DNA from: Malacoraja senta
Taxonomy: Eukaryota
Assembly: GCA_038087875.1 (NCBI GenBank)
Contig: CM075978.1
Location: 180,172,001 to 180,236,000 of the forward strand
DNA length: 64,000 nt
Reading direction: 5' to 3'
The position numbers were made by a program, and so were the translations under genes. This document shows positions 213-43,440 of the stretch, one piece after another (the stretch's first letter is position 1; each line of letters opens with the position of its first letter). The notes under the pieces were generated by a model. The model saw nothing but the letters and a program-made list of their open reading frames with translations. It searched no databases and was not told where the DNA came from.

Positions 213-509
213 CTCCCCCAACTCCGTTGAAAATCATTCCGTTTAAAGGAACTTCATCGCAGTCTCGGAAACTTGTGTGTAAAACGGCGAGCTTTTATCC
301 GGAAAAAATAGAAATCTCCTGGCGGAGAAATAACGAAGAAATTCTGACCGGAATAGAAACGGTAAAAAATAAAAGCACAGAGGGATTGTATGAGGTTTCC
401 AGTTTTTTGGAAGAAATTAAACTTGCTTGGAGCGACGCCGTTTACACCTGTTTGGTATCTCATGTTTCCCTTGAGGTGCCAGCAGCTCTCAGCTACATCG
501 TCAAAAAAG
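213..509 (+). CDS. Receptor gene 1, Ig C1-set domain exon (phase 1-1)
   Basis: AG at 211-212, GT at 510-511, 297 bp open. Encodes APPTPLKII..LVCKTASFYPEKIEISW..YTCLVSHVSL, with the C1 FYP/W and YxCxVxH motifs. Paralogous to 14102 and 39578. Confidence 0.92.
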
Positions 510-785
510 GTAAGATTGTCAGTACTTGCAGCCAAGAGCGGGTGTATATGCCCAACCTGGTTAGAATTTAAATATACAGCTGCTCAAACACGGGGACAAT
601 GCCTAGATGCGACCCGTGTTTATTCGTAATGAGAGATCAATGTTTCAAAATCACAAATCAATCATGGAGCAAGAAGCTCAAAGGCTAATTGAGGTGTTCT
701 GTGTTATCGCTAAATCCCTAAATGTGTATATATTTCTATATATTATATCGTTCACATTTTCCCTGTTTCTCTCTTGATCCATAAG

Positions 786-884
786 ACGCAGATAAAAACC
801 TAATTATCGGATGCGCAGTTGGTGTCTTGGCAATTTTAGTTTTGGCCATTATCTTGATAAGACACCAATTAAAGGCACAAAATG
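786..884 (+). CDS. Receptor gene 1, transmembrane exon (phase 1-1)
   Basis: ataag| ... g|gtgaga, 99 bp. Encodes DADKNLIIGCAVGVLAILVLAIILIRHQLKAQN. Same size as the gene 2 TM exon. Confidence 0.88.
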
Positions 885-1203
885 GTGAGAATTATACACA
901 TTTTACAGTATTCTCGGTCTTAATCATAATGGTGGTTAAAAAAACCAAGGGCAGTTAATGGTATTCGATTGCAAAACAATGAAATAATTGAGAATAAAGC
1001 TGACCATTAACAATGACAAAAAGAAATCTCAAGATATAAATCTTACATCTTCCCATGTCAATATTTCAATCGTCGTATCTTTTTGTTGTCTCCATCGGTT
1101 ATTGTTCATGATTTGCAACTTGTTACCATCATCGCAGTTCCAAATATTTACAGGAAACAATTATGCGCAGATCTTGATTGTGTTGGCGCAAAATAGGTTT
1201 TAG

Positions 1204-1256
1204 GTCACTACTACTCTGATAGCCATCCACAGTTTGATTTCCATTGTGATTTTGAG
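1204..1256 (+). CDS. Receptor gene 1, cytoplasmic linker exon (phase 1-0)
   Basis: ttttag|gt cac ... gag|gtataa; GHYYSDSHPQFDFHCDFE. Same position, phases and GH start as the gene 2 exon at 15639. Confidence 0.55.
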
Positions 1257-1334
1257 GTATAACATGACAGCTGAGGCCTATAACATTTCGTTGCATTCAA
1301 AGATACATTCCATTGTGTTTCACACCTTTAAGAG

Positions 1335-1496
1335 GATGAGAAGGTAATGTATAAAACACAACCTTATAACAATGGGTTATGCTTAAATCATCCATATGGT
1401 GCCCGCGGGCGTTCTTCATTTGGGCGACAATATCGATTGGCATCAAAGTACAACCTTCATGGGCAGCAACTCATACAAGCAAATCCGACAGGGTGA
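1335..1496 (+). CDS. Receptor gene 1, candidate terminal tail exon a (phase 0)
   Basis: Open 53 codons, DEKVMYK..NNGLCLNHP..SSF..QQLIQANPTG*. Aligns loosely with gene 2 exon a (DENIISF..NNNLNIP..TSF..HNLIYSKVKG). The acceptor is weak. Confidence 0.4.
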   Translation, partial: DEKVMYKTQPYNNGLCLNHPYGARGRSSFGRQYRLASKYNLHGQQLIQANPTG

Positions 1497-2051
1497 ATAA
1501 CTTCGTATTTTTCAAACAAGAGTGTACTTTACTTTAGACTTTTAGACTTTAGACTTTAGAGTGTCTCAAAGAAGGATTACATGTCAGCAAATGGCATGTG
1601 TTAATTCCATAGAATCTTAGAATGTCGTAGGAGAGAAATAAACTATTCTATCCGCGTTACCTCTTTATTTTCATAATACCTACAATGACTATTTTAAAGT
1701 TCCCGGTGAATCTACTTTCAGCATCCATTAATGAGTGCATCAGGGTTGTAAACACGAGAGAACATGGCGCGTGGATATCAATGTGGGAACTTTTGCAGTT
1801 ATCCGTTGATTGAAGTGAATATATATTTAACGGCTCCACATTGTGATAATGAAAGTTAATTTCACGTACATCTCAGAAACATTTAATCTCATAACCTTAA
1901 AAGTGTAAATCGTCTGATAATTTGGGCATTTCATTAATTGCGCAGATTGCGAATCCACATTGCTAGAATTAACAACAGATTGCGTACTCACTTTAACATG
2001 TTTAGCACTTTCCAACAATCAAACTTAATTTTCCGGGTCCATCTTTTATAG

Positions 2052-2722
2052 TGATACAACTAAATACAATTGGCGAATTAAAAGGCACATACATGAAGGA
2101 GCCGGGAAGATATCATCCTACCCAGCATCGATAAACAACGCCACAAAAATGCGAAAGCCAATAATGACCCCGAAGCACAAGCGTTCGGTAATTCACCGAA
2201 ATTCGGTAGTGGTGCCGAAGCCGAGGGATATTAAGCAGGGTGCAGTGATAACACTTTCAATCTACCAAGTATGCAATGGGGTCAAGGAACGAACGTTCAC
2301 GTCGCGGCCCTGTTTTCACCAATCTATCCACCACCACGCACAAGAAGCACAAGAAGCGCAAGACAGACACCATTGTATGCAGATGCCGAGAAGTGTGTTC
2401 AGCTCTGGTTGAACAACTTCTAATCTTGTGTGTGGTCTCGATAAGAAGAGTACGCAATGTTGGATGATTTCAGCCAAAGTACAATATGATCAACTCTATT
2501 TCCTAGCGACCGTTGATTTCCTGACAATTGTGCAGGCAGGTTCAACGTAGAATTTACCCCATGAGAATATAGGTTAAACGGTCCATCAGCGAATCTTAAA
2601 ATTATACTTTGCATTATCAGCATTTTTAATGGTTAATATTAAATGTTTGCTACTTTAATTCTACTATTCGTCTGCCCCCTTAAGCAGATTCCATTTACGT
2701 TCATATAAATGATCGACGATAA
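2052..2722 (+). pseudogene. Receptor gene 1, disrupted tail cassette c (2052-2187) and c2 (2688-2722, SIYVHI ITIM)
   Basis: DTTKYNWRIKR matches gene 3 NAVQYKWKIKK, but the frame is offset by one base from the acceptor. A TTCG|GT donor is present. The phase-1 exon at 2688 encodes DSIYVHINDRR*. Confidence 0.4.
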
Positions 2723-3193
2723 CGAAGAAAGCTAATGTTCTGTGGGCCAGGAATGATTAGTAGCACCGAAGATCAACACTAAGTGAAATCAGGGAAAGAA
2801 AGTTAATGAAGAATGGCAAAAGAAAATCTGATAACAATTTGCTACTTACAGATCAATGGAAGATCTCTAACTAAACTAAAGTAAAAAGACAGAATAGGCC
2901 ATCCCAGCAGTAGCGCGCAATAAAGTTTTCGAATAAACTACTGTTTTCTCAACTCATTAGAAGCAGTTCCCCAGCTTGAAGTAAAGCACTTTTATTCCCG
3001 TGCCCGTATATCATTAAAGATGGCTGATAGCAATTCCATATTTGTTTGCACGTAGGTGCAGTCTCATGGATTATTATGAATCCTGAAATGTATATACATT
3101 CTCTATGAGACTGGTAGTATTTTGTTTCAAAATCGTATTCTTTGTGCCACCAGAGGGTAATGAACTAATGAACAATATAAATTACTTTCACAG

Positions 3194-3343
3194 ACTAAAG
3201 ATGATCAATTCTACGTTGTATTATGTCGGTTTGCAGTTACTCAACTCCAATCAACAGTAACATTTAACCACCAAGCGGAACATGTACCTTATGCAGATGG
3301 AAATGTTTTAAAGAAGGAGCGAAACTGGGAATCGAAGCTGTAG
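3194..3343 (+). CDS. Receptor gene 1, candidate terminal tail exon d (phase 0)
   Basis: Acceptor attactttcacag is identical to the gene 2 exon at 19955. Open 49 codons, TKDDQFYVVL..EHVPYADGNVLKK..*. An ITIM-like LYYVGL sits in a shifted frame. Confidence 0.55.
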   Translation, partial: TKDDQFYVVLCRFAVTQLQSTVTFNHQAEHVPYADGNVLKKERNWESKL

Positions 3344-11150: not shown

Positions 11151-11507
11151 ATACGGTCCTGCCCGATTTCAGTAATTTAAAAATATCCAGAAAATTACTG
11201 TACACTTTTGATTAACTGAGTAGGCAGCTGATGCATATTTAGTTCCGAGTAAAAATCTGGATGCTACGGGAGTCAACAAGGGGAGAAGACTGTGAACATG
11301 ATTCAGGAAGTATTGGAAGGCTTTGTTACAATAGGAATGGGCCGAGCTATTACCTCTGCCGCCGCACGAGCCCATTACTCAGCCTCAGTCGTGGGATATA
11401 TTACGTCAAGGTCACACGTTTCATATATTCACTCATGAATTCCTTTTCCGCAGAACGAGTTTTGAGTAAACAACTCGAACAACAAGTTGGCAATTTATTC
11501 TTGTAAT

Positions 11508-11562
11508 ATGTCGGCGAACGTTACAGTTTGGTCCGTGGCTCTTCTGGTTATACTTAGACAGG
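11508..11562 (+). CDS. Receptor gene 2, leader (signal peptide) exon
   Basis: ATG at 11508; MSANVTVWSVALLVILRQ-G; 55 bp, phase-1 GT donor. The gene 3 leader has the same size. Confidence 0.82.
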
Positions 11563-11735
11563 GTATAGTTAATTATGTGTGCCATTTCCGGTTTAAATAT
11601 TATTTTTCGAGGTCGGACCTGGTTTCGAGCTATTAGGTTAATCTATTAGGCCCTCGTGCTTTTCGACAGTTGGTTCTTCTTTTCTCTGTCCACTGTGTAC
11701 AACTGTTTCCATTGTTCTTGCTTATTTCCCATCAG

Positions 11736-12041
11736 CTACCGAAGTTTCTTCGAGCGGAGTATTGCAATTCCCTAACAACTTGGACGTTGGCGGCGGTGAA
11801 AATGCTATCATGTATTGCACATTTCCAATATCGCAAGACACTACTGACGTTAATTGGTGGAGGGACGGCATGAAGACATTCCTTGAACCGGACAGAAGAA
11901 AACAATTTGCGATAGATTCTGGAAGGGGAACCTTTACTCTCCAACATGTGCGTGTCGCTGACTCCGGCCTGTATTACTGTCAAGTAAAGTTTCAGCAACA
12001 AGTTATCGGGAATGGAAGTGGCTGCCTGATCACTGTATTGG
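11736..12041 (+). CDS. Receptor gene 2, V-type Ig domain exon with germline J-like G strand
   Basis: 306 bp, phase 1-1. Contains MYC, NWW, DSGLYYC and IGNGSGCLITVL, followed by g|gtgagt. Confidence 0.93.
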
Positions 12042-13167
12042 GTGAGTGTGTGTGTTAGGGAAATAAGCAATTTTCAGTTCTATGCTATTTGCAAAGTAAA
12101 ACTAGTCGCGGGGATAATATGAAAAATCGCCTGTTAATAAATACCCGGTAATAACAATTTATGATAAATGCATTACAGAGACTGGTAATTCAAAATGAAA
12201 CAATGCACAATGTGAATAATCATCAGGTCGGGTAGCACTCGTGGGACGCGTGGGTATTGAGGGTTATTCTGTTCATTGTACGGTACCTTTCGAGACGCCT
12301 TTTCATTGCCATCGGCGCAGCCCATTAATTTAGTGGTCGCGAATTTTAAGCCAATCTCCCAGGTGGATTTATCGCTAAGAACGGGTAAGTGCTTGAGATG
12401 TAAGAAATTCATTCGGCGGTGTGGTTAGAAATGCTTTGCAGTGAGATATTGAATTAATATTTCTTCTAGTTTGAATGGCTGGAGTATGATGTCTAGGTTT
12501 CTCATCACCAAGAAAAGAGAGTAGGGGCAATTTTAATGCGTCGATCGTAGAGTCTGCCATGCCTCTAATCTACATCAACAGCTTTAAAACCTCAGAAGAC
12601 CAATGTGCAGCTGCAACCCAAGGACCTTGGTGTTCCAAGATGCGGGACCTATCAGTTCCTCCAAGCTGACTTCAATGTAATTTTTTTGTTTGGAAACGCT
12701 TGACACTACTTATGTAATGCATAACTCCAGTCTATCCCACCAATTTGTCAAAGTACGGAGCAAAAAAGAGAAAAACAACATCTCAACTGAAATTCCCTCA
12801 TATCATTATTATTTAAAGTCGGGGAATAAATAGTAATATTTCTTTCATAGTTAAAGATTATCCTGATTAAGTGAATTAAGTCAAACATTTTAAAGAGATT
12901 GCTTGTAATAAACTGACAAAACAACCCAACAATCGACTCCCAGTCCAGTTAGACACCGACTGCAGCTCGAACGGAAGGAGTTCGCGTTAATAAATGCCAA
13001 ATATAGGACCTTTACGTGCAGACCTAAATTAGTAGAATCTGCACAGCGAGAAACAGAGCTTGTTCTATTCCCTCGTTTGGCTTCTGCAAGCTATCATCAT
13101 TAACGCCGATCTAGCGTTGTCGATTCACTGTCGCCAAGTTGGCACAACAGATGGAACTGATTTGTAT

Positions 13168-13350
13168 AGAGACACAAAATGCTGGAGTAACTCAGCGGGG
13201 CAGGCAGCATCTCTGGGTAGAAGGAATGAGTGACGTTTGGGGTCGAGACCCTTCTTCAAACCTCGATCCTTAACGTCACCCATTCATTCTCCGAAGAGAT
13301 GTTGCCTGTCCCGCTGAGTTACTCAGCATATGTTTGGTTTAAACCAGCAT
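13168..13350. repeat. Head-to-head inverted pair of Penelope-derived repeats in the V-C1 intron
   Basis: 13168-13237 is roughly the reverse complement of 13272-13335. Confidence 0.8.
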
Positions 13351-14101
13351 CTGCAGTTATTTCCTACAAACTGATATTGAATAAGTGCGTTCGTAGATTG
13401 CTTGTAATAGATACCACGACGTTTCAATATAAGCATTCAATGCGCGAGAAAAGTGTCCCAGCACTTGGTTCACATGTGATCGGCTGTGATCGGCAGTTCA
13501 AACCCAAATCTGGTTCTGGTTCTGGTTCTGGTTGATTACTGCGCAAAAACATGATAAGTGGTTACCTCGCGCAGGTCGGAGTGAGTAGAGTAGAGTAGTG
13601 ATTACATTTTGAAGTGGGGCTTTTTGACCAGGTTGAGGAGATTTAGTTCATATACTACTTAAAGAGCTAACGGAATTAATCATTAATCTTCATATATAAC
13701 CGCTTCCTGTCACCACACTATACAAATCTGTTATATATCGATTATGATAGCTCACTTTTTTTTGCAACATATGAATGATCCGAATATGGCCACTTTTAAA
13801 TAATCACGGCAGGCTTCTGGCAAACACTTTCGCGCGATACCGGGGAACGTCCATTCAGAACAGAGTTTATTTTGGAACTCCTTAAATTCTGTTGGCACTC
13901 CTTAAATTCACCCTCTTTGTATCTTGACGGAATTCGTCCGGTTGTCCGCTATGAAAGGAAGTATAAATGAACGACAAAATGGGAAGTTTAAATATTAAAT
14001 AATTTGGTTCCTGGGTAACACGACTCGGTGTCGAGATAAAATGTAAATATTTACAATGAAATGGAAAGCGAACACCCGAGAAATGTTTGTTTTTTATTAA
14101 G

Positions 14102-14395
14102 ATCCCCCAACTCCCTTGAAAATTGTTCCTGCTGAAGGACTTGGCTCTCCACGGAAACTTGTGTGCAAAACGGGCGCCTTTTATCCGGAGAAATTAGAAA
14201 TATTCTGGCTAAGAAATAACGAGGAAATTCGCACTGGAATCGAAACTGTGAAAAGACGGAGCGGAGGAGGATTGTTTGTGGCTTCTAGTTTTTTGGAAAT
14301 AACGCAGCCTGGCGAGGGCAAAGATATTTACACCTGTCTGGTATCACATATCTCCCTGAAGGTGGCGGCCAGTTTCAGTTACACCCTGGGCCAAG
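14102..14395 (+). CDS. Receptor gene 2, Ig C1-set exon (phase 1-1)
   Basis: 294 bp open; LVCKTGAFYPEKLEIFW..YTCLVSHISL; g|gtaag donor. Confidence 0.93.
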
Positions 14396-14935
14396 GTAAG
14401 ACTGGAGCCAGTTACACATGATATTGGGGCGGTTGATCAAATTCGATCAGATTAATAACTGGACAGCTTTCCGTACACGGAGGGAAGGGTAAAAATAATA
14501 ATGTGACTCGCATTTATTCGCATGAAAGCAACACTTGCATGCTGTTTAAAATGAATTGTACTTCATCCGTTCTTGTAAGGAAATCCGTGTGAGATGAATT
14601 GACAAACTGAATTAATATAGTGTTTGTAATGAGCAAAGACGTCCTGGGATATGCATATATCCGCTGTCTGGTGTAATATATGAAGATAAAGCCTAAATTC
14701 CGTTGAACGTTAGTAAGCAGCTGTCCGCACATGGGCACAATACAATGGCATTTGTTTGTCCTGTGGATTCCATTACTAACTTCCATCTGGTGCCTTCTGA
14801 TATACCTTCCAAACTTTCGGATGTGGGTATTAAAATGCACCTACGAAATGATTTACTTTGTTGACTGCCGTTTGTATATTTGTTCTGAAATGTATAAATT
14901 CTTTACTCTTTCTTAAATATCTGTTGCTCCATCAG

Positions 14936-15034
14936 GAATTGATCGCAAACAGATTATCGTATATGCAGTAGGCGGATCAGTAATTTTAGTTCTGATTATA
15001 ATCGTGATAAGACTCAGTTTAAAGGTATGGTACG
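14936..15034 (+). CDS. Receptor gene 2, transmembrane exon (phase 1-1)
   Basis: 99 bp; GIDRKQIIVYAVGGSVILVLIIIVIRLSLKVWY; g|gtaagt donor. The membrane-spanning segment has no charged residue. Confidence 0.9.
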
Positions 15035-15638
15035 GTAAGTATCTTGATAATTTACAATAAACATTTCTATGGTTAAAAAGAGAATGGATATGTCAATGGT
15101 GTTTGCTCACAGAGGAGTAAAGGTAACTTAAATGGATATGTAAAGAGATTTCTGAAGCCGGTTTTGATATATGTCTGTGATAATATAAGATGGATCTTCA
15201 AATTCAATTATTTCAGCTTGGAATTGGATATATTCAATTTATCACCTATGCATATCTTTTCAAATATAAGGAATTCTTCAAACATCCAATGCGATGGATT
15301 ATTAATGCAATGGAAGATTGCGATTTTGAGGAAAAAACAACTGTGGCTTCTGTGGCAATGAGCAAAACCAATCATCTCCATATTTTTACATTACATTGCT
15401 GTTTTGACATGGACACAGTTCCTTATAAACCATCACAAATTTAAAGTTTCAGTTAAAATTTAGGTCCAGTGGGCGCAACATCACGAAAGAGTACAAGACA
15501 GCCATCGGATATTTAAAAATGCAATCGTTCTTACTTTCTGCAGTAAAGTTGATTAATATGAGAAGAATAATGTCAAAATCTACAGATCAATCTTTACAAT
15601 TCAAGTTGTTTTACTTAATTCTTATTTCATTCCTCTAG

Positions 15639-15682
15639 GCCATAACGTAACCTCTGTAGGAATACGTCAGAACGGGGAGCCG
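15639..15682 (+). CDS. Receptor gene 2, cytoplasmic linker exon (phase 1-0)
   Basis: 44 bp, GHNVTSVGIRQNGEP|gtaggt. Same length and donor as gene 3 40956-40999. Confidence 0.8.
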
Positions 15683-15783
15683 GTAGGTGATATGTTTCCT
15701 TTTGTTTCAAAATAGGGATTATTTGTAGCAGACGTATTATAAATCCGTTTTCTTCCATAGTATCTTGGAATACTCTAGGACAG

Positions 15784-15930
15784 GATGAAAACATTATTTC
15801 CTTTTCAGGTTACGTCAAGTATACATCCAATAATAATTTGAATATTCCTGTTGTATCTGCTTCAACATCTTTTGACAATTCCATGCCAGATCATAACCTA
15901 ATATATTCTAAAGTGAAAGGTGATGTTTAG
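15784..15930 (+). CDS. Receptor gene 2, candidate terminal tail exon a (ITIM LIYSKV)
   Basis: cag|DENIISFSGYVKY..DHNLIYSKVKGDV*, phase 0. The exact acceptor is uncertain. Confidence 0.55.
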   Translation, partial: DENIISFSGYVKYTSNNNLNIPVVSASTSFDNSMPDHNLIYSKVKGDV

Positions 15931-16599
15931 GATGAAAATATGAGCTTCTATTAGTTCTGGTGGCAGGAACACTTAAAAATAAATCTTAGATAGTGAGAAC
16001 GTATCAAATATCAGACTACGAAGAGATTGTGTGTTGCTGACCAATGGGAGAGTAAGAGGAACAATCAACCCGTAAGGCAAAAGTTATATTGAATTTCAAA
16101 GCACGGTAATTAAAGTAAAAATGAAAAGAACCTTTGTCGAGAATTTACTGTGCTTTGTTGAGCCGTTCTTTAACGTGCTAATTGCAGTTTTGGCTTCGAT
16201 CCTTAGCGAAGGGTCATTTAACCGGATATGGCCTACATGGCATCGAAACTGCTTCCCACAAAATTGATATTTTGTGCTGGCTGCTAAATGGAATCCCACA
16301 AATGCATCTTCCACTCTGCAATGCTTAGAAGAAGAAATCTCCAAAATCTGCAAAAGACTGATATTTGTATTGACATTGGTTAATTATTGCCATGTGCACC
16401 AAGATTCAATTAGAAACTTTATTTTGCGTGCAATCCAGAAAATGGATACCATATATTGGTACAATGAAACCATACCAAGTGCATAAAGGGAAATGACACA
16501 GAATGCAAAATATAGTGTTACAGCTAAAGAGAAAGTGCAGATTTTAAAAGCGCAAGGACCAGAACGATGTAAATCGCAGATCAGGATTGCATCATTAGC

Positions 16600-17700
16600 T
16601 TGCGTGACGCCTGTTTAGTAACTTGATAACATCGAGTATAAAGCTGTTTTTGAATCTTACACAAGGCGATTTCAAGCTATTGTGTATTCCGACCGCCGAG
16701 AGAGGGAAGAAGAGAGAATGGCGGAAGCTGGTTTACGTGGTTGGCTGGTCTTCAAGCACATGTTCCTGCGTTTCTTAAGGTCTTGGGCAAAGCTGTCGCT
16801 AAACCAATTTGGGATTCATCCCCATATAATTATTTCGACAGTGCAGCTGTGGAATTTGGGAAGAGACATTGGAGACAGTCCACCTTTCCTTGGTCCTCTG
16901 CGAAGGTCGAGGCATTTGTGTGCTTTCATGGCGTTGGCATTAATGTGGTTGGACCAGGGCAAATTATTGGTGATGTTTATCTCCAGGAAACTCGACCAAC
17001 ACCATTGATGCAGACTGGGTCGTGTACTTCACCTTGTTTCCTGAATTCAATAACTATTGCCTCCATTTTGCTCACATTGAGGGAGAGATTGTTGTCCACA
17101 TGCAGTGTCACTAAACTCTCTACCCCCTTCCTGAACTCTGTCTGGTCATGGTTCGAGATCTGCTCCACCGTGTTGATGTCATGTGCAAACATGTAAATCG
17201 AGTTAAATTGCAATTTGGCGGCGGTGTTGTGAATGTATAGGGAATATAGTAATTGGCCGAGAGAGCAATGTTGTGGAGGCCCTAACGTTCAGTATTTCCA
17301 TGGAGGATGTTTGGTTGTTTATCCTTACTGACTGCAATCTGTGGACCAGGAAGTGAGGATCGAGTTGAAGATCGATTTGCTGCGTCTTTGATCCAGGCGT
17401 TGGGAGATTAGTTTGATTAGAATAATGGTTTTGAAAGCCGAGTTGCATTCAGAGTCTGATATACAGGTCGGTGTTGTCCAGATTTCTAACGATGCTGTAG
17501 TAACAGGGAGATTGCGTCTGTCGTCTTTGCAGTTGCAGTGATGAGTGAATTGCAGTGGTTCAAGACTGTCCGGGAGGCTGGAGTAATGTTCGCAGTCACC
17601 AGCTTGGAAAAATCAGTTCGTGTTGGTGAATGTCAAAGCCACTGGACAGTTGCAATCGAGGCCTGCTGCATTGCATTTCTTTGATTAGTTTATGTTTTTT
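16600..17700 (-). mobile_element. Decayed Rex/Babar-like LINE RT fragment
   Basis: ORF 16977-17213: FAHDINTV..DQTEFRKGVESLVT..NNLSLNVSKMEAIVIEFRK, an RT C-terminal region. Boundaries are approximate. Confidence 0.7.
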
Positions 17701-19009
17701 CGATTAGAGCGATATTTAATCAGATGGGAACATTAGAATCGAACAAGGATAGGATAAATGTGTTCGCCAATACACTCGCCTGCTGGTTCGTGCTGGTTGC
17801 GATGACGCGGCCTAAAACATAAATCTGTTGTCATCTCGCATCGAGATTCAATCAGAAATATCTGGAAAATCACCGCAGTTCGGACAGCATTTGTGGAAAG
17901 AGAAACCGTCAATTTTCAGATCCAAAACGCCTCATACAATTGCTTGGAATTTCAGTGTTTCTATTTACACAGCGTGATCAGCTGCGATTTTCAGCATCTC
18001 TTCTGTTTTACCTCAGATTTCCAGGATGTTCATATTTTAATTTCCACACCTAGATTTTTCTGGCAACTACATTAAATCTGTATCATTTGTATCATTTAAC
18101 GTGGGTGATTGTTTCTGTATGCTTAATATGTTGCACGCTTTAATTTTAATGAATTTCTTAAATTAACACAATGGTATTTGGTATAAAGGCAACGATGGAA
18201 TTGCCTTTGACTTTCCCAAGGCCATGGTCACTTATCATTGATTCCATAATAATATGCTTTATCAAGTTCGTTCAGTGTTCGAAATTCTCCCTGAAGTACA
18301 CAACTCAAAATTGTGAGCAATATTTTACATAGTCGCTGTTAAATATTTATTATGATGTCCTTCCCCTTACATGCCATGCCATTACTTGAGCTGATATATG
18401 CTGCTTTTACGAATTAGTGTACCGACTTCAGTCATGCTGTAAATAATTTACTAGCACAAACAGATCAGCATAGGCCCTGGACCCCCGTCCCTACATTTGC
18501 TGTTTTAGCTATTCCAGTTAACAAGGAACTATGAGCTCCAATCTCTGCAATGGCAAATCAGGCAACATGAAATGCTAAGGATCACATTATCTGTTTGGAA
18601 CCCATGAGGGAATCGCCTAGGACTTTCAATCTTTGGTTCCGCCATTAAATGCAATAATAAGTCAGGCTACAGTAGAGAAAGGAATTTGGGCGTCGCCACT
18701 GCGGAAAGCATAGAAGTGCGTAGGAATCTGGAAATGAACAGTGACAAAAAGAGATGACAAGATTTGAGGAAACGTTTCCATTTGGAGGGTTGTTTTCAGC
18801 GGCTGTTTAAAAATCAACTTCATTGTGGCGCTAGGATTGTCCACCTTTTCCTTGAGATGACATAGTTGGTAATATCATTGACAGCAAGTGAAATGTTAAT
18901 CTATTCCTCTATATCCCGCGTGCATCGATTTTCAGCCCCAGATACAGTTCGAATTCCCTATCAGCTATATGCCTGGTCACCCGCAATATTAAATGTAATT
19001 TTCTAATAG

Positions 19010-19153
19010 GTGAGACAAGCACCAATTGAACATACCACTGCCTATGCTACACTGAATTTAAGCGAGAGCAAAGGATTTTCAAATGGTCTACAAGAAGAAC
19101 AGCATGTCATCTATTCACAGGTAAAGCCCTTGGACAGCGTAATTAAGATATGA
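19010..19153 (+). CDS. Receptor gene 2, candidate terminal tail exon b (TAYATL + VIYSQV)
   Basis: ttttctaatag| phase 0, 47 codons then TGA. A homologue lies at 42246 in gene 3. Confidence 0.72.
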   Translation: MRQAPIEHTTAYATLNLSESKGFSNGLQEEQHVIYSQVKPLDSVIKI

Positions 19154-19378
19154 AATGATCATTGTTCCAAATGTAGTTGCTTTTTCCAAACTGCAGGGAA
19201 AATATAAGTGCACAATAGCAAATCTTAATTTAAGTAAAACCTATCACCCACTGCACATCAGAGCAAAAATATAATTTTCCTTTCCTTATTCGGGTTTAAA
19301 TTCAAATGTAAATTGTATGTGAAGAAACAAAGGGTGGGAAGCTAGGAACACACAAACCTACCCAGTTCTCATAATCAG

Positions 19379-19877
19379 AGCGAAACTAAATACAAATGCC
19401 AGACAATGACCTGGGAAAAGAGAGCAAACAAGACGTTCAAATTATCCACCGAATAGGGGACTCGTGTCAAAAACTGGGGACGCAGAGCCATAGGAAATAG
19501 TACCAACTTATATTCTATTGCATTTCGGTGCCACTGATGCAGCCGTGAGCCGAGGTGTCTATTGGAAAGGTACCGGTAGCTTCAGTCTGCGAACCACCTC
19601 TTGGGCTCTACAGGCGAAATAGATTCCCGCCAATCCCACAAAAGGGGCTTCGTATTATGCCAAATATTTAGTACTGCGGATACAATTTTGAGCATTCACC
19701 AATTCTCCTAACTTTCTTAATTACATCGAAGTTGACATAAAAGAAAAAGAAAATCATTCTTTTGTGGGACAAGAACGGCTCCTCGGGTTTAAACTCAATA
19801 TCAGGCAGAAAGGTATAGCCAAAAATAAATCTGTGCAAATCGATACCATTGTGAAAATTACAACATGGTTTGCATAA
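19379..19877 (+). pseudogene. Receptor gene 2, tail cassette c (19379-19527, internal stop/frameshift) and c2 (about 19693-19877, LNYIEV)
   Basis: SETKYKC aligns with gene 1 DTTKYNW and gene 3 NAVQYKW, and a TTCG|GT donor is present. The c2 motif LNYIEVD parallels gene 1 SIYVHIN. Confidence 0.38.
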
Positions 19878-19954
19878 AATTTTATTTTAAAGCAGTATGC
19901 TCAAATTTGTCACTGAATGATTGCCTAATCGCCGATCATTCATTACTTTCACAG

Positions 19955-23193: not shown

Positions 23194-23276
<83 letters not shown>

Positions 23277-34059: not shown

Positions 34060-37000
34060 GTGGGAGGAGTAAAGTCCGGGCGGTGAGTACAAAACCCCAT
34101 CTCGGGGCTTCGTTCCACAGAGGCCCGGGAGCCGTTGGTAACGTTCCATTCGCAGTTTACAGTCCAAAACAAGAGGAAGCTGCTGATTGGTGGAAGCGGA
34201 CTAGAGGAAGCAGCTGATTGGGAGTCAGATCCCTGCTGATTTCTTCCAGCAGTTTGTATTGTACTTATATTGTATTTGTATTGTATCCTAGGTACAGGAG
34301 GAGTATGAGGGCCAGGGCAGTTTACTGTTCTGGATGTCAGATGTGGGAGGTCAAGGAATCTGATAGCCTTCCAGACGTCCACATCTACGCCAGGTGCATT
34401 GAGATGGGGCTCCTAAGGGACCGTATTAGGAACCTGGAGCAGCAGCTCGATGACCTCCGTCTTGTCAGGGAGAGCGAGGAAGTCATAGAGAGGAGTTATA
34501 GAGAGGTGGTCACTCCAAGACCACAGGAGGCAGGCAAGTGGGTCACGGTTAGGTGGGGCAAGGGGCAGAGGCAGGGACTAGAGAGTACCCCAGTGGCTGT
34601 ACACCTTGACAATAAGTACTCCTGTTTGAGTACTGTTGGGGGGGACCGCCTATCTGGGGGTTGCGACAGCGGCCAGGCCTCCGGTACAGAGACCGGCCCT
34701 GTTGCTCAGAAGGGTAAGGGAAAGAGGAGGAGGGCAGTAGTAATAGGGGACTCTATAGTTAGGGGGTCAGATAGTCGATTCTGTGGACGCAGTCCGGAGA
34801 CCCGGATGGTAGTTTGCCTCCCTGGTGCCAGGGTCTGGGATGTGTCTGAACGTGTCCAAGATATCCTGAAATGGGAGGGAGAAGAGCCTGAGGTCGTGGT
34901 ACATATAGGTACCAATGACATAGGTAGAAAAAGGGAAGAGGTCCTGAAAGGAGAAGTTAGAGAGTTAGGAAGAGAGTTAAGGAGAAGGACCGCAAAGGTA
35001 ACAATCTCGGGATTACTGCCTGTGCCACGCGACAGTGAGAGTAGGAATGGAGCGAGGTGGAGGATAAATGCGTGGCTGAACGACTGGTGCAGTGGGCAGG
35101 GATTCAAGTTTCTGGATCATTGGGACCTCTTTTGGGGAAGGTGTGACCTGTACAAAAAGGACGGGTTGCACTTGAACCCGAGGGGGACCAATATCCTGGC
35201 GGGGAGATTTGCAAAGGCTACTGTGGAGACTTTAAATTAGAACGGTTGGGGGGAGGGACTCAAATAGAGAAAGCTTGTAGACAGTGTGTGAGGCAGGAGG
35301 CAGAGAATGGAAGCACTCAGACCCAACAGGTAGGGGGGGAAGAAGAAAAAAAATAATAAACAGAGAATAAGAGGTGGTGGGTTTCTTAAAGGTGTGAGCA
35401 AAGAGACAGAGGGGTGTAAAATGAGGGTAGAAGCAATAGGTAGCAAGGTGAAAAGTAAACGTGGCAGGCAGACAAATCCAGTGCAAAAATCAAAAAGGGC
35501 CGCTTTTCAACATAATTGTATAAGGGGTAAGAGCGTTGTCAAAACAAGCCTGAAGGCTTTGTGTCTCAATGCAAGGAGCATTCGTAATAAGGTGGATGAG
35601 TTGAATGTGCAGATAGCTATTAATGATTAACGCCGGGAAGTAGTGTTAGGTAAATTGAATGGATTAAAGGCCGATAAATCCCCAGGGCCAGATAGGCTGC
35701 ATCCCAGAGTACTTAAGGAAGTAGCCCCAGAAATAGTGGATGCATTAGTGATCATTTTTCAAAACTCCTTAGATTCTGGAGTAGTTCCTGAGGATTGGAG
35801 GGTAGCTAATGTAACCCCCCTTTTTAAAAAGGGAGGGAGAGAGAAAAAGGGGAATTACAGACCAGTCAGTCTAACATCGGTAGTGGGGAAACTGCTAGAG
35901 TCAGTTATTAAAGATGGGATAGCAGCACATTTGGAAAGTGGTGAAATCATTATACAAAGTCAGCATGGATTTACGAAAGGTAAATCATGTCTGACGAATC
36001 TTATAGAATTTTTCGAGGATGTAACTAGTAGAGTGGATAAGGGAGAACCAGTGGATGTGTTATATCTGGACTTTCAGAAGGCTTTCGACCAGGTCCCACA
36101 TAAGAGATTAGTATACAAACTTAAAGCACACGGTATTGGGGGTTCAGTATTGATGTGGATAGAGAACTGGCTGGCAAACAGGAAGTAAAGAGTAGGTGTA
36201 AACGGGTCCTTTTCAGAATGGCAGGCAGTGACTAGTGGGGTACCGCAAGGCTCAGTGCTGGGACCCCAGCTATTTACAATATATATTAATGATTTGGACG
36301 AGGGAATTGAATGCAACATCTCCAAGTTTGCGGATGACACGAAGCTGGGGGGGGGGGGGGGGGCAGTGTTAGCTGTGAGGAGGATGCTAGGAGCCTGCAA
36401 AGTAACTTGGATAGGCTGGGTCAGAGGGCAAATGCATGGCAGATGCAGTATAATGTGGATAAATGTGAGGTTATCCACTTTGGTGGCAAAAACAGGAAAG
36501 TAGACTATTATCTAAATGGTGGCCGATTAGGAAAAGGGGAGATGCAACGAGACCTGGGTGTCATGGTACACCAGTCATTGAAAGTAGGCATGCAGGTGCA
36601 GCAGGCAGTGAAGAAAGCGAATGGTGTATTAGTATTCATAGCAAAAGGATTTGAGTATAGGAGCAGGGACGTTCTACTGCAGTTGTACAGGGTCTTGGTG
36701 AGACCACACCTGGAGTATTGCGTACAGTTTTGGTCTCCAAATCTGAGGAAAGAAATTTTTGCCATAGAGGGAGTACAGAGAAAGTTCACCAGATTGATTC
36801 CTGGGATGTCAGGACTTTCATATGAAGAAAGACTGGATAGACTCGGCTTGTACTCGCTAGAATTTAGAAGATTGAGGGGGGGATCTTATAGAAACTTACA
36901 AAATTCGTAAGGGGTTGGACAGGCTAGATGTAGGAAGATTGTTCCCGATGTTGGGGAAGTCCAGGACAAGGGGTCACAGTTTAAGGATTAAAGGGAAATC

Positions 37001-37274
37001 ATTTAGGACCGAGATGAGAAAAACATTTTTCACACAGAGAGTGGTGAATCTCTGGAACTCTCTGCCACAGAAGGTAGTTGAGGCCAGTTCATTGGCTATA
37101 TTTAAGAGGGAGTTAGATGTGGCCCTTGTGGCTAAAGGGATCAGGGGGTACGGAGAAAAGGCAGGTACAGGATACTGAGTTGGATGATCAGCCATGATCA
37201 TATTGAATGGCGGTGCAGGCTCGAAGGGCCGAATGGCCTACCGCTGCACCTATTTTCTATGTTTCTATGTTTCT
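34060..37274 (+). mobile_element. CR1 LINE, second family, with open ORF1 (ATG 34305 to 35240) and an internal deletion of most of the endonuclease at about 35630
   Basis: SGNH motifs in ORF1. ORF2 jumps from LNARSIRNKVDEL.. to REVVLGKLNGLKADKSPGPD. RT motifs and a (TTTCTATG)n tail are present. Confidence 0.92.
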
Positions 37275-37751
37275 AGTGGATGATGAAATCCTTATCAACG
37301 ACATCACTTGGCTATAATGTATCTCATTTAAATGCTGCAATTGAGGCTTGGGGTTATTGGCTGAAATGAATAGAAATTCGCAGCGTGACTAACTCAAAGA
37401 TCATCACACCCTTCTGCATTCAAGGTGGGATAATCTGTGACAGTAAGCACGAAATATACGAGGCTGAATATTTGTCTGCCCTGTCATCTTATGCTCCGGT
37501 AGGACAAAGTCTCAATTTGAGAATGAAGTAAAGGTAAATGGATTTCAATATGTGTTGTCCAAACACTGTGCACCAACAATGGCTGGGAGAGAAATCATTT
37601 TGACGTAGGAAATCGAAGAAAACATATTTCCTATATCGTATTCGCTGAAAATATAAATATACTCAAAATGCATCACGATGCCTTAGTCATGTGATTTACG
37701 GCGTCGGAGTCACACGCTTCAGGCATTCTATGAAAACCTATTTATTGCAGT

Positions 37752-37806
37752 ATGCCGGTGAAAGCAATGGTTCGGTACATGGGTCTTCTTGCTTTAGTTT
37801 GTCAAG
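37752..37806 (+). pseudogene. Receptor gene 3, leader exon
   Basis: MPVKAMVRYMGLLALVCQ-G, 55 bp, phase 1. Confidence 0.75.
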
Positions 37807-38012
37807 GTATACTTAGTTTCTGTACCGATTTCGCTAATCAAATCATATTTGTCAATATTTTACACTAGTATGCCACAGCAAATTAAATTTACAACGTTTC
37901 TGCAATTGCCTTACCACTATTTCCTAATTGTTTTGTATTTGTGTATCCATTGGCTCTTTTTCTTGGTGCTGTATGTGCAACTGTTTTCATCATATTTACT
38001 TATTTCTGCCAC

Positions 38013-38317
38013 TGACAAAAGCAACTTCGAGCAAAGTAGAACAATTCCCCGCATTCCTGAAATTCTCCAGAGGCACAAATGCATCCATGTTCTGCAAATT
38101 TCCAATATTAAAAGAAACCGCTGACGTTTCTTGGTGGAGAGGGGGCGAGAAGACATTTATGGAACCGGACAACAGAAAGCAATTCAAAGTAGACAAGGGA
38201 AGCAGTACGTTTACTTTGCTGAATGTGAGTGTCGCAGACTTGGGGATGTATTACTGTCGAGTGAATATCAACTGCAACTTATCGGCAATGGAACTGGCTC
38301 CCAGCTAATTGTGTTAA
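38013..38317 (+). pseudogene. Receptor gene 3, V exon with a 1-nt deletion near 38264 and acceptor AG>AC
   Basis: About 58% aa identity to the gene 2 V domain (54/93 by hand). The G strand YQLQLIGNGTGSQLIVL lies in a shifted frame, giving a stop at 38306-38308. Confidence 0.88.
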
Positions 38318-39577
38318 GTAAGTTTATTTGTTACGGGATATGTTCATCTGTTGCAATGTAACTAAAGCTTGCTGATGGAGAAAATATTAATCTTATCCAG
38401 TTCTATAATTTTAATGGTTACTTCCGAGGTGAAAATCTGAAATATAGGGAACATACTGAAAAATATACCATGCGTCGGTCAATATACGTGCAGCGAGAGT
38501 TCTGTTATAGTTTTCTTTTATTTACTCCGGGTTATCTTACAAAGTCATAGTGCGTTACCCTGGTTATTGCTCTTGTAAATTGGCAGGTCAATTTATATTT
38601 TGACCTCCAGCTTTTCAAATACCCAACCAAATTCACGTTACTCCGAATTTCCAGAAAGTTGCAAATTTCCCACCCGACAAACTTTCCCATCAACTAATAA
38701 CGGAGGAGAAATGGATCTCACAGTTTTGAGGTGGATAATTTTGTTTACACTTTCACAGTCTCCAGGAAAGTTCATGGAATGAAAAAAGAAAAAGAAGAAC
38801 TACAACTGAAATTCTCCGATATTATTTCTTATTTAAAATAGATCCATGGTTATATCATCGTATAGAATAGAGTTTTGCTTGGTAATCATTTATATGGCAC
38901 AGGGAGTAAAAGGTAATATCGCTTTATTAATTAATAATGATCGTACAATAAGATGTTATTACATCAATGAAAGAAAGTAAAAATGCTTAAAAACAAACGA
39001 CATTAAGGAGATTACGCAATGAATTGACAAAAAAAGGTACAATTAACTCTCCCGCTCGCTAAATATTACTGACAGTGGCTCCAGCACAAATGGAACCATG
39101 TTCATTAATGTCTTGTTAATAAAATATGAAATGAGAAACAGAGTTTGCTCGGTTCATCCTTGCGTGTTTTTTGAGAAAATCAATTGTTGTCGCCGATGTA
39201 CTTCTGCCATTCAGTGCAGTCCATTTTCTATAACTACCACATGCACATAAGAAAGAGCAAATGTTCAGAAGAATTGCGTGATTTTGAATTCAACATAAAG
39301 CACTGTCGCGGAATCTTACCAAGCAATACATGTGTCACATTCCTTCATAATAATCGCGGGAACCCCGCGGGGCAGCAGTACTAAAGTTTACTCCATTCAT
39401 GCTTTGTTTCAATTGCACTACTTATCTTGATATCCTCCGTAAAATAATTTATAACAAAATTATAAACTCAACAAACAACCACACGGATAACAGGAGGCAA
39501 CAGCAACTGCTCAGCGACAATTATGTTCATTGAAATAAAATATATTTTACAGTTTCACGCTTTTTATATTGTTCCAG

Positions 39578-39861
39578 CTCCCCCAACTCCATTGAAAATT
39601 GTTGCTATTGAAGGAAGTGCACCGCATTTGCCGCAACTCGCGTGCAAAACGGCTGCGTTTTATCCAGAGAAATTAGAAGTTACAACGTGGAAATTTTGAC
39701 CGGTATTGAAACCGTGAGAAACAGAACAGCGGATGGATTTTATGAGGCTTCCAGTTTTTTGCACGATACGCAACCTGCTCCAGGCAAAACTGTTTACACC
39801 TGCCTGGTATCACACATATCTCTTACAGTCCCTGCCAGTTTCAGCTACATTGTCGAGCAAG
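39578..39861 (+). pseudogene. Receptor gene 3, C1 exon with a 13-nt deletion
   Basis: 284 bp versus 297 bp in gene 1. The deletion near 39680 removes the C-strand Trp and gives TGA at 39697-39699. Confidence 0.9.
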
Positions 39862-39907
39862 GTAAGCCGGGAGGAATTTAACGCAGACTCCAGCCGCCGA
39901 GAAATAC

Positions 39908-40005
39908 AATCTGAACAAGGGTCTCGATCCGATATGTCTCCCATTCCTCTCTCCATAGATGTTGCCTGTCCCGCTGAGTTACTCCAGCTCTTTTGTGTCT
40001 ATTTT
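39908..40005 (+). mobile_element. Degenerate Penelope-derived short repeat in the gene 3 intron
   Basis: ctgaacaagggtctcgatccgatatgtc..gctgagttactccagc; the core is mutated. Confidence 0.65.
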
Positions 40006-40379
40006 CTAATACAATTAGAGAGTTGTGCAAACACAAAAATCCAGTTCCTTTTCATATTTACTGGAACCTGCGGTGGCGGGTCCAGGGTGTCAGATCCAGA
40101 ATATAGAATGCATTCTGACTTTTTAAACTGTTGTCAAACTACCGGGCGTAGTTTTGTAAAATGAAATTGAACAGTCATCTTAACTTAATAACCAAACCTC
40201 TGCAAAGAGCCACCGTATAATGTGATCTGTTCTATAAATTCGCCATTACCGTACAATGCGTGCCATGTGGCAGTCATAAAATCTTTGTACAGAAAATATT
40301 GAACGATTGCTCTGCCTTCTTGTCTCGGTCCCTGTATATGTATTTATGTTTCACCGTTCTCATTTTTCGCCATATCCAG

Positions 40380-40490
40380 AAACCCCTGAAACCACGGACA
40401 AAACTCTAATTCTCCGATGTGTCGTGGGCGGACTGTCAATTGTTGTCCTGCTTATAATTTTGACAATATTCGCATTAAAGGCATAACGAG
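40380..40490 (+). pseudogene. Receptor gene 3, TM exon with Arg and an in-frame TAA after the TM
   Basis: ETPETTDKTLILRCVVGGLSIVVLLIILTIFALKA*. TAA at 40484-40486 aligns with CAA in gene 1. Confidence 0.85.
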
Positions 40491-40955
40491 GTAAGAACCT
40501 TGCATAACTTTTCATTTCATGTATCCGTAGATAGAAAAGCGAATGGTGCATTCTGAGAAGTATTGAAACAAGAAGCCAAAGCAAAACTAATTATTAGTTG
40601 TAAGTTAAACTAAAATTATTTCCCCTGCCCTTTCGAATTATTCAATCATCTTTCGATTGTGTGTTTTTCAAACATCTGTATTGTTAGCGTGTTGATTTGC
40701 TTTAAAGTCAGATTTTGAAGCATGGGTTATTTGGTGTAGACGTTCGCTTCCTCCGGTTGTGCAGATCTAACGCGGGTGGTATATATGAAGGTAATGCACA
40801 ACACATTACATTGTGGCGATGGTACTCCGATACGTATACGGGATTGTCGCTGCCTTCAAGGATCCATAGGCAGTAGATGTGATTATAATGTAATGCGTAA
40901 CTTACATTTTCATGACATTAAAATGTTATTCGTGATTTCTCTTTTATTCATGTAG

Positions 40956-43440
40956 GTATTAATGCAAACCCCGTGGAAGCAAGTCATAGCGTAGAACCGG
41001 TAGGTGAAGCTATTCTTCTTGTTTCCAAGAGGGATGGACGAGTACAGAAATTATACGAGCAGCAGAGAATATATCAGTTTCATTCCATATAATTTTATAA
41101 CATTGCAGCGCAGAAGGAAACCATTTTGCCTGTCACCTCTAATATTGGAAGGGGCGCAGCGAGTAAACCTGCAATCTCTTAGTTCCGTCCTGATCGGGTT
41201 CAATCCTAATCTCGTACGGTACTGTGGGTGATTTGCAGTTTATTCCTGTGTGCTTTTCGGCCGGATGCTCTACTCCCCTTGTATCCCAAAGTGATGCGGA
41301 TTGCTCGGTTACTTCGCTACTATAAATTGCGACCTAAGAATGAAAGTACATGTAAGTGCATAAGGGCAGACGACAAACTCGTCCCACTACCAGGTGCTCA
41401 CATAGGCCAGGTTGCCTGGGAGATACAGGGGGCACTGTTATCGCTGCCGGAAATCTACAGGGAAGCCGGAAACGGCGATAACGGAGACGGAATAAGATGG
41501 CGGGAAGTGAGAAATTGATCGCATTTGGAAGAGAGATTTTTCAAATGAATCGCAAGCTACAATATTAATAAACAAGTTGAACACTGGCACTTTGAATCCT
41601 CACGGGAATGACATTTTGAGAAATATAATTGAATGCAGTTCAAATGGTATCGTGCCCCTTTTTTGCAATCATTCTGTATGTTTATGTTTCAGACTCACTC
41701 TTTAAAGTACTACATCAGACCCTCTGCTAACTGTGCTGAATATCACTTTCTAATAGGTGTAGCGGCAGATTTTTATATCGTTCAAGAAATTACTCCCTCT
41801 CGCCGCTAAATGGACTGCATAATTAAGGAGAATGTCGTTTACGCATGCGAGCTCTCCATCAGAGCCCTTCATAGCTTCTTCACAGATAAATCTTCATAAC
41901 ACAGTCTTTTGATTAATAGATTGTTTATTGTTGATAAAAAACCTTGGTACATCCAAACTTCTTCCGACTCACACACAAAAATCTTCATCGAACTCCAGCA
42001 TATCGCTTTAATGGTTAGAAAACTCCTCGTGTCTCCATTACACTTCGCATGATCAAAGGGTATGCCTTCCCCATACTGGTCCAAAACTAAACTAAAAACT
42101 AAGCTTCTGGGGAAGAAACCTAGCTCCAAACACGCCCTAAAATACGTCATAAATCCCACCCTCAATATAACGGGCAGTCTAAAATTTAAAGACACATGCC
42201 ATCATTAATGACACACAAAACAAGCTCAAATGGCCACTACAATAGGTTCGGGAAACGTCAAGTGAAGATGCCTCTGCCTACGCAACACTAATCTTGAGAT
42301 AGGGCAAAAGAAATACCAAATATCGACGCAACGAAGAGCATGTTGTTCATGTCGAGATAAAGGCAAAGTGTTTGCACGAAAAGCATTCCAAGTAAACATC
42401 AGATTAAAGGAAATTATTTTTGTTGATTATGAAGCAACGTGAACATAATTTTGATCTTGTACGACTGTGGAAAAGCGCGTAATGACGAATTTTGAATTGT
42501 GGCATTGAAACCAGATAGAGCAGAACGACAGATTCAGCTGCATGAGACCATCGCACTGCAAAATTACCTTTATCTTTATTCTCGGATTTTAATGTAGAAT
42601 GCTGTCCAATATAAATGGAAAATTAAGAAACAGACAAGGTACCCGCCAACAGGTTTTTCCACCCAGCGGTCATATCCAGTGCCAGGAAATATGAGAAATT
42701 CAGACAATGACAGGAGAAACAGAGTGAAATCTGAATTCGGGATATCCACCTCAATAGGGGACAGGTGGCAGGATGGCACTGGACCTCAGAGAGGTTTATT
42801 ATATTATTTACAGAGTACTATGTTTACTTATTCTGTTGTGCTGCTGCAGCTAAGAATTTCTTAGTTCTATCTGGGACATATGAGAAGCACTCTTGACTCT
42901 TGACAGTGTTTCCATATTATCTAACGAAGATCACACAGTGACAGAGATATTACGGCTTCTCGTCTATACACAAGGTTAAAAAAATCCTGGCCTTCGGTGC
43001 TGTCAGTGTGAAGGTTGAACGTTATTTGGTGCGTCCTCGCGGGTTTCCCGAGGTGCTCCGAATACTTCGCACATCCCGAATCACGTGAGGGGTGGTAGGC
43101 TAATTAGACATTTAAAATGTCCCGTGTTTAGGCAAGTGGTATAATCTAGGCGTGAGTGAAGTGGTGATGGCAATGTGGAGAGAATAAAATGGGAATATTT
43201 TTAATGGATATTTGTGTTACACTGTTCGCTGGACCACGAAAGGCTCCGCAGAAGACTGGATAAATAATATGAACATAAACTATTCTACGTTATCTGCAAT
43301 CTGGAAATTATAATTGTTGGCTATATTCCAATTGTGTTGAAAATTGATTGCTTTCCTAAATCACTGGACAATGGACTAACAGGCAATATTGCATTTCTTT
43401 CACAGACCAAATGAGGCGGAGATGACCAGATGACACGCCT
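40956..43440 (+). pseudogene. Receptor gene 3, linker exon (40956-40999) and tail cassettes a (41114-), b (42246-42395), c (42598-42739), d (43406-, truncated)
   Basis: b reads VRETSSEDASAYATLILR*..EEHVVHVEIK. c is open, but its donor is GG instead of GT. d retains tttcacag|acc aaa and then stops. Confidence 0.62.

Follow-up and report, generated by a model that had tools for sequence, protein, structure and literature searches.

Three tandem V(J)-C1 receptor genes in a skate

We analysed a stretch of 64,000 nucleotides from the genome of the skate Malacoraja senta (assembly GCA_038087875.1, contig CM075978.1, positions 180,172,001 to 180,236,000; hereafter the window, numbered from its first letter). 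It holds genes for membrane receptors built from a variable (V) domain with a joining (J)-like G strand, a C1-set immunoglobulin (Ig) domain and a transmembrane (TM) segment. The window contains three such genes, tandem paralogues on the + strand, which belong to a multigene receptor family of cartilaginous fish with a non-rearranging V(J)-C1-TM architecture. One of them looks functional (gene 2), one is doubtful (gene 1) and one is, in this assembly, a pseudogene with an apparently segregating 13-nt lesion (gene 3). Stop-to-stop reading frames and tblastn with family proteins, applied to the whole 64-kb window, revealed no further family gene on either strand. The J-like G-strand peptides quoted in an initial annotation of the window lie on the + strand at 12005 and 38281.

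Gene 2 is intact

Gene 2 consists of seven exons (11508-20092, + strand) with canonical AG/GT splice sites, and these join into an open frame of 348 amino acids. In the lists below, a slash within a splice site marks the exon boundary.

11508-11562, + strand: leader exon; 55 bp, starts with ATG, phase 1 donor, part of the assembled frame.
11736-12041, + strand: V(J) exon; 306 bp, V-set 37.3 bits and I-set 33.2 bits (Pfam), donor gtgagt.
14102-14395, + strand: C1-set exon; 294 bp, YTCLVSH motif, Pfam C1-set PF07654 46.5 bits (cut-off 21 bits).
14936-15034, + strand: connecting peptide and TM exon; 99 bp, donor tacg/gtaagt, equal in size and phase to the TM exon of gene 1.
15639-15682, + strand: cytoplasmic mini exon; 44 bp, phase 1 to 0, donor gtaggt, placed by a phase-constrained search.
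19010-19120, + strand: cytoplasmic exon with TAYATL and VIYSQ(A); 111 bp, independent E-value (i-E) 2.6e-8 with a tail hidden Markov model (HMM), 59-65% to ray homologues by tblastn, bounded by splice sites.
19955-20092, + strand: last coding exon with LTYATV, an immunoreceptor tyrosine-based inhibitory motif (ITIM), and TVYADV, an immunoreceptor tyrosine-based switch motif (ITSM); 135 bp plus stop, tail HMM i-E 7.4e-12.

The V exon runs without interruption from framework region 1 through YYC to the IGNGSGCLITVL G strand and the gtgagt donor, and 53 residues separate the two cysteines of the domain. Whereas Ig and T-cell receptor (TCR) genes have separate V and J segments flanked by recombination signal sequences (RSSs), here everything from V to the J-like strand is a single exon that ends in a splice donor. 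A scan for RSS heptamers and nonamers found none within or at the end of the V exon of either gene 2 or gene 3; the sole RSS-like match, an intronic heptamer with a poor nonamer, was dismissed as chance (background 0.67 per kb). C1-set domains occur almost exclusively in antigen receptors, MHC molecules and a small number of associated proteins, and the solved domains (PDB) closest in sequence to the gene 2 C1 domain are Ig heavy-chain constant, MHC II beta-2 and MR1 alpha-3 domains. A hydrophobic scan and the sequence itself indicate that the TM segments of the window genes are uncharged.

The cytoplasmic tail of gene 2 contains four tyrosine motifs in two pairs, TAYATL with VIYSQA (as spliced) and LTYATV with TVYADV; only LTYATV and TVYADV are canonical. 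The mini exon that leads into this tail has a counterpart in gene 3 with the same position, length and gtaggt donor, ends in EP as the ray homologues do, and is needed for the frame to stay open. The region 15639-21517 had also been considered as an array of alternative terminal exons; for the parts that could be placed this is ruled out, because 15639-15682, 19010-19120 and 19955-20092 are consecutive in one frame and colinear with ray homologues.

Genes 1 and 3 are degraded to different degrees

The window starts inside gene 1, at its C1 exon, and the leader and V exon of this gene lie upstream of the window. Three exons could be placed:

213-509, + strand: C1-set exon; 297 bp, phase 1 to 1, acceptor aag/ct, donor g/gtaaga, C1-set 49.2 bits.
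786-884, + strand: connecting peptide and TM exon; 99 bp, uncharged TM, ends in phase 1, located by hydrophobic scan and tblastn to family TM regions.
3194-3343, + strand: homologue of the last cytoplasmic exon; open frame, tail HMM i-E 0.17.

The gene 1 C1 domain is 57-64% identical to other C1 domains of the family. In its last-exon homologue, QFYVVL and VPYADG, both off consensus, take the place of LTYATV and TVYADV of gene 2, and searches of 885-3193 with an HMM, a phase-constrained exon search, blastn and local alignment turned up neither a mini exon nor an ITIM exon. Gene 1 appears to be a doubtful copy, its inhibitory motifs decayed or gone. As a separate observation, splicing directly from 884 to the homologue at 3194 would give one codon and then TAA; speculatively, this might yield a tail-less receptor, with about 10 residues on the cytoplasmic side.

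Gene 3 retains counterparts of all seven gene 2 exons, most of them damaged:

37752-37806, + strand: leader exon; 55 bp, intact.
38022-38317, + strand: V exon, disabled; placed by DNA alignment with gene 2, tblastn matches in two frames and the list of open frames.
39578-39861, + strand: C1 exon; 13-nt deletion after 39681, from alignment with genes 1 and 2.
40380-40490, + strand: TM exon; in-frame TAA at 40484-40486, directly after LKA.
40956-40999, + strand: mini exon counterpart; 44 bp, matches the gene 2 mini exon.
42246-42383, + strand: ITIM exon relic; SAYATL and then a stop, second Tyr changed to His (tblastn, tail HMM).
43406-43434, + strand: last exon relic; TGA at the third codon, ITIM tyrosine lost (blastn against the gene 2 last exon).

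At the V acceptor, gene 3 has AC where gene 2 has AG, but 9 nt further on there is an AG in frame. Loss of 1 nt after YYCRV shifts IGNGTGSQLIVL out of frame, and the in-frame reading stops at a TAA. The 13-nt deletion in the C1 exon removes the codon for the C-strand Trp and shifts the frame. Read from these lesions, gene 3 is evidently a pseudogene in the present assembly. Some 580 bp before the gene 3 leader lies the end of a long interspersed nuclear element (LINE), in which a GDSL-esterase-type ORF1 precedes fragments of a reverse transcriptase.

We compared 37700-43400 with contigs from two public runs, X1 and X2. Run X1 covers the gene 3 locus at even depth with 1-2% differences, and it therefore represents another haplotype or individual. 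Its contig carries ATCTGGCAAAGAA after 39681, which restores the frame, the conserved Trp and LEVIWQRNNVEI; the 13-nt lesion is thus either not fixed (a segregating null allele) or an assembly fault. Over 40297-40573 the X1 contig matches the window exactly and thus has the same TAA in its TM exon, and X1 coverage at the site of the V frameshift is uninformative. Run X2 contains 86% of sampled words from the gene 2 region (11500-15100), yet over gene 3 it has only repeats and zero unique coverage. This gap may reflect copy-number or presence/absence variation, or merely thin contigs, and the hole by itself proves nothing.

The initial annotation had ascribed one full architecture to each of the three genes, and this description fits gene 2 throughout. 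The 55-bp leader is found in genes 2 and 3, that of gene 2 in phase 1, and none for gene 1 lies in the window. A V exon with an in-frame J-like strand and a splice donor, and with no RSS, is present in gene 2; gene 3 likewise has no RSS, but its J-like strand is out of frame. The C1-set exon is complete in genes 1 and 2 and short of 13 nt in gene 3, and the TM exon is present in all three genes, in gene 3 with its early stop. Tyrosine-motif tails, which had been attributed to every copy, are found as such only in gene 2, because the motifs of gene 1 are off consensus and the relics in gene 3 carry stops.

Outside the three genes, the window has a G+C content of 38-51%, numerous LINE fragments and one N run of 243 bases. 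The N run (45500-45742) lies inside a G+C-rich, proline-codon-rich, low-complexity and repeat-bearing region (44000-48500), for one reading frame of which a Pfam scan gave no match. LINEs were located at:

34218-37175, + strand: LINE.
54811-57723, - strand: LINE.
59745-62495, - strand: LINE that looks nearly intact, with a 917-aa endonuclease and reverse-transcriptase frame.

A multigene family of cartilaginous fish

To place these genes, the gene 2 C1 exon was searched against 1.84 billion protein representatives. This returned many proteins of 236-414 amino acids with a single C1 match at about residues 122-217, which share a signal peptide, a compact V domain, a J motif of the form G(T/S)G(S/T)xLxV, a C1 domain starting PPTPLKI, the YTCLVSH motif and a TM segment; tail motifs of the LTYAAL type are frequent among them. 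The gene 2 frame aligns with family members over its full length. Named members are all chondrichthyan (Mobula, Hypanus, Hemitrygon, Pristis, Narcine, Leucoraja, Heterodontus, Heptranchias, Scyliorhinus, Chiloscyllium, Mustelus, Carcharodon and Callorhinchus), and they bear seven inconsistent automatic names: SIRP-alpha-like, NCR3LG1-like, TCR-beta-like, Ig-lambda-like, MHC II-like, PD-L1-like and tapasin-related-like. Word-indexed protein searches with a ray homologue, the family profile and a coelacanth SIRP-like protein gave chondrichthyan-only or coelacanth-only returns, and our literature searches found no paper describing this V(J)-C1 receptor family.

The family is well separated from other proteins in both domains. 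With a C1 HMM, scores are 72 bits or more for members and 58 bits for the best protein outside the family; with a V HMM, full-length members score at least about 58 bits (N-terminally truncated models fall below this) and the best non-family protein, a coelacanth SIRP-like protein, scores 30. Most members have one C1 match, and a few (P0014, P0174, P0169) have two C1 domains. The strongest multi-domain matches of the C1 exon (P0001, P0004 and P0007) have 5-10 C1-type domains and come from white shark (where the protein is named titin-like), sea turtles and coelacanth; these may be UrIg2-like multi-C1 genes reaching beyond cartilaginous fish.

In a tree built on V plus C1, with branch support from the Shimodaira-Hasegawa-like approximate likelihood ratio test (SH-aLRT), genes 1-3 fall within a batoid clade (SH-aLRT 96), whose sister is a shark group. 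Here gene 2 branches as sister to a set of 15 sequences from stingrays and mantas (SH-aLRT 99), and gene 3 clusters with sequences from Narcine and Mobula (SH-aLRT 96). These positions imply that genes 2 and 3 had already been separated by duplication when skates split from stingrays and electric rays, and their synonymous divergence (dS about 0.8) agrees with this. The coelacanth SIRP-like sequences form a long, unstable branch in the same tree.

V is somewhat more variable than C1

The initial annotation had put the V domains of genes 2 and 3 at about 58% identity and taken this as a sign of diversifying ligand recognition. The figure is accurate, as we measured 57%; the interpretation is not supported by it. 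One of the two sequences is a pseudogene, the divergence barely exceeds that of C1 (59-66% identity), and the ratio of nonsynonymous to synonymous substitution (dN/dS) stays below 1 in both domains (V 0.39, C1 0.28-0.36); the comparison therefore gives no specific evidence of diversifying selection. Across 25 subfamily members, mean identity is 54.6% for V and 63.6% for C1, with V the lower in 269 of 300 pairs, and the variable V positions are scattered across the domain, the FG loop included. This greater variability of V is consistent with faster V evolution, and positive selection is not demonstrated by it.

Structural and profile relationships to named receptors

For a ray homologue, AlphaFold2 (AF2) models the ectodomain with confidence. 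When this two-domain model was compared with PDB by Foldseek, the matches, at least 500 of them, were antibody light chains only, an outcome that confirms the V-C1 fold of the model and is of no help in choosing a family. Among Swiss-Prot models, SIRP-alpha of cattle, human and rat came first (E 1e-16 to 3e-14), with alignments that span almost the full length, followed by CD276, tapasin-related protein, PD-L1, NCR3LG1, TCR beta and Ig lambda, with BTN and SKINT also present. This mixture of structural neighbours explains the muddled automatic names of the family.

SIRP-alpha is thus the best named structural match, and profile methods also connect it to the family. Alignment by hhalign to coelacanth SIRP-like proteins gave a probability of 99.3% (E 4e-20, 24% identity) over V plus the first C1, and the family profile matches the SIRP-alpha ectodomain 2wng with E 4.7e-26, V and C1 being contiguous. 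SIRP-alpha and the family share a non-rearranging V domain with a J-like G strand, then a C1-set domain, a TM segment and, as seen in gene 2, a tail with four tyrosines in two pairs; the succession of an N-terminal V-set and a C1-set domain is seen with Pfam and in the alignments to 2wng and the coelacanth proteins. The genes could accordingly be true cartilaginous-fish SIRP orthologues, that is, CD47-binding myeloid checkpoint receptors, as the many NCBI models named SIRP-alpha-like and the few members with two C1 domains would also allow. We nevertheless consider such orthology unlikely. SIRP has three Ig domains, of which two are membrane-proximal C1-set domains, whereas the window genes and most family members have one, and in the window a single C1 exon lies between the V and TM exons. 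The family V domain is compact and lacks the C'-C'' segment, visible as a gap in the hhalign alignment and in the short spacing of its cysteines. Identity to SIRP is just 17-24%, scores for Ig chains and UrIg2 are equal or higher, and the automatic names are inconsistent with one another. Finally, unlike SIRP, the family is a large multigene expansion, so far found only in cartilaginous fish.

The J-like strand and the C1 domain raise a different possibility, namely that the products are antigen-receptor-like chains that pair through C1 and V into homo- or heterodimers, with a germline combining site, as a living relic of the time before RAG. The GxG(S/T)xLxV bulge motif on the G strand is as in Ig and TCR V-V pairing, C1 domains are nearly always paired (PMC2785349), and the antibody light chains returned from PDB fit the same picture. 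The top PDB match of the family profile is, moreover, a UrIg2 chain (9dmx), although three C1 domains add up in that score and profile searches inflate the scores of multi-domain chains; domain-only searches of PDB were uninformative, since chains with many Ig domains, titin and Ig heavy chains among them, receive inflated whole-chain E-values. Like the family, UrIg and UrIg2 are elasmobranch, have a single-exon VJ domain, a split leader and C1-type domains, and do not rearrange. UrIg2, however, carries at least nine C domains and forms dimers joined by disulfides, with no inhibitory tail described, and UrIg and UrIg2 are two distinct paralogous genes, not a large multigene family (PMC12227049). 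The window genes instead have one C1 domain followed by a TM segment, with an ITIM/ITSM tail in gene 2, and belong to a multi-copy family. They have neither a membrane-proximal interchain cysteine nor a charged TM residue for a signalling partner, the inhibitory tail is unlike Ig or TCR, and published analyses give the precursor role to UrIg and UrIg2 (PMC12227049). We therefore judge it very unlikely that these genes encode paired antigen-receptor-like chains.

The V domain alone points in no single direction. An AF2 model of the gene 2 V domain (predicted local distance difference test score 92) superposes best on the skate VNAR 8ht3 (Z 14.8, root-mean-square deviation 2.0, 96 residues), with NCAM, CD79b, titin and TCR V domains close behind and V-set and I-set Z scores within about 1.5 units; its neighbours in Swiss-Prot are CD79b, CD8 beta, CD7, TCR and Ig V domains and NKp30. 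The C'' strand is absent from VNAR, from I-set domains and from the gene 2 V domain alike, but this is a likeness of shape only, and VNAR is made by V(D)J rearrangement whereas the gene 2 V exon is germline-joined. The differences in Z are too small for a claim of kinship with VNAR, and the likeness may be just that of a common compact shape. By this model, the domain is of the VJ type and lacks C''.

Two further comparisons can be made with NKp30 (NCR3) and the PRARP genes. NKp30 is an activating receptor whose charged TM segment couples to adaptors with immunoreceptor tyrosine-based activation motifs. It resembles gene 2 in its germline VJ-type V domain; it has no C1 domain, whereas the window genes have a C1 exon and an uncharged TM segment. 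PRARP-A and PRARP-B (Fu et al. 2019, J Immunol, cited in PMC10751288, as is UrIg) reportedly form a linked gene pair in bony vertebrates.

That the genes encode B7-family or B7-H6-like ligands rather than receptors is extremely unlikely: although CD276, PD-L1, NCR3LG1, BTN and SKINT are among the Foldseek matches and some members are named NCR3LG1-like or PD-L1-like, SIRP-alpha outranks every B7 protein, the gene 2 C domain scores 12.5 bits with C2-set_2 (CD80-like) and 12.9 bits with C2-set_3 (BTN), the domain types characteristic of B7 proteins and both below cut-off, against 46.5 bits with C1-set, and the J-like motif and ITIM/ITSM tail point to a receptor.

A tandem array with one probable inhibitory-type receptor

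Considering all of this evidence, we regard it as highly probable that the window holds tandem V(J)-C1-TM paralogues of a ray-and-skate clade, with gene 2 an intact receptor of SIRP-alpha-like inhibitory type, gene 1 a tail-decayed copy and gene 3 a pseudogene. The product of gene 2 would be a type I membrane protein with a compact V domain, an antigen-receptor J motif on its G strand, one C1-set domain, an uncharged TM segment and a four-tyrosine tail. In the mechanism that we infer, the V domain would bind a ligand, probably one on a cell surface; Src-family kinases would then phosphorylate the tyrosines of the ITIM and ITSM; the two tyrosine pairs, each spaced by about 22 residues, would recruit the tandem-SH2 phosphatases SHP-1 and SHP-2; and activation of the leukocyte bearing the receptor would be damped.

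Several points weigh against this interpretation. The ligand, the type of cell that carries the receptor and the recruitment of phosphatases are putative elements of the proposed mechanism. Within the tail, VIYSQA is not a consensus ITIM and TAYATL is no more than ITIM/ITSM-like, and the likeness to the SIRP-alpha tail depends in part on what we take to be the human sequence. The mini exon is the weakest part of the gene 2 model and is best described as a predicted exon, placed by phase, length and its paralogous counterpart. The two public runs that contain the locus span introns as well as exons, so they look like DNA, and a further run search confined to RNA libraries listed none. In the profile search the family resembles SIRP no more closely than it does Ig chains or UrIg2. 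Lastly, because X1 is without the 13-nt deletion, part of the picture of gene 3 as a dead gene is allele-specific, or possibly an assembly fault.

In the initial annotation the genes had been described as a lineage-expanded inhibitory family, putatively of NK or myeloid type, that resembles a precursor of antigen receptors from before RAG. The expansion and the absence of rearrangement are borne out, and the tail of gene 2 is of inhibitory type, although only one of the three copies is intact. The relatives proposed there, SIRP, NKp30, B7-H6 and tapasin-related proteins, do turn up among the nearest structural matches, SIRP-alpha first, and no one-to-one orthology to a characterised receptor emerged, the members carrying their seven different public names. 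As for the precursor, the resemblance is architectural and goes no further, and the published candidates are now UrIg and UrIg2 (PMC12227049).

SIRP-alpha has long been argued to sit near the precursor of antigen receptors, a link proposed in connection with its C1 domains (PMC2785349). A bolder reading builds on this: the family would be the cartilaginous-fish branch of the lineage that founded SIRP, still in the ancestral single-C1 form, a germline V(J)-C1 chain that innate cells would carry with its inhibitory tail. Only one step would then part it from the V(J)-C1 gene split by the RAG transposon, and its compact, VNAR-like V domain and its C1 domain may pair into germline combining sites diversified by gene duplication instead of rearrangement. 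We think this improbable as a whole. Returning to the array that we favour, with its one intact inhibitory-type gene, it bears on annotation, since the seven automatic names all denote one family, in which intact, tail-decayed and dead copies stand side by side. Its main interest lies in the relation among SIRP, UrIg and the rearranging receptors. Such a large V(J)-C1 family, bearing ITIM tails in each of the three chondrichthyan lineages, would be the counterpart that SIRP has lacked among early vertebrates, and with synteny and phylogeny, a common V(J)-C1 ancestor of SIRP-type inhibitory receptors and rearranging receptors becomes testable.

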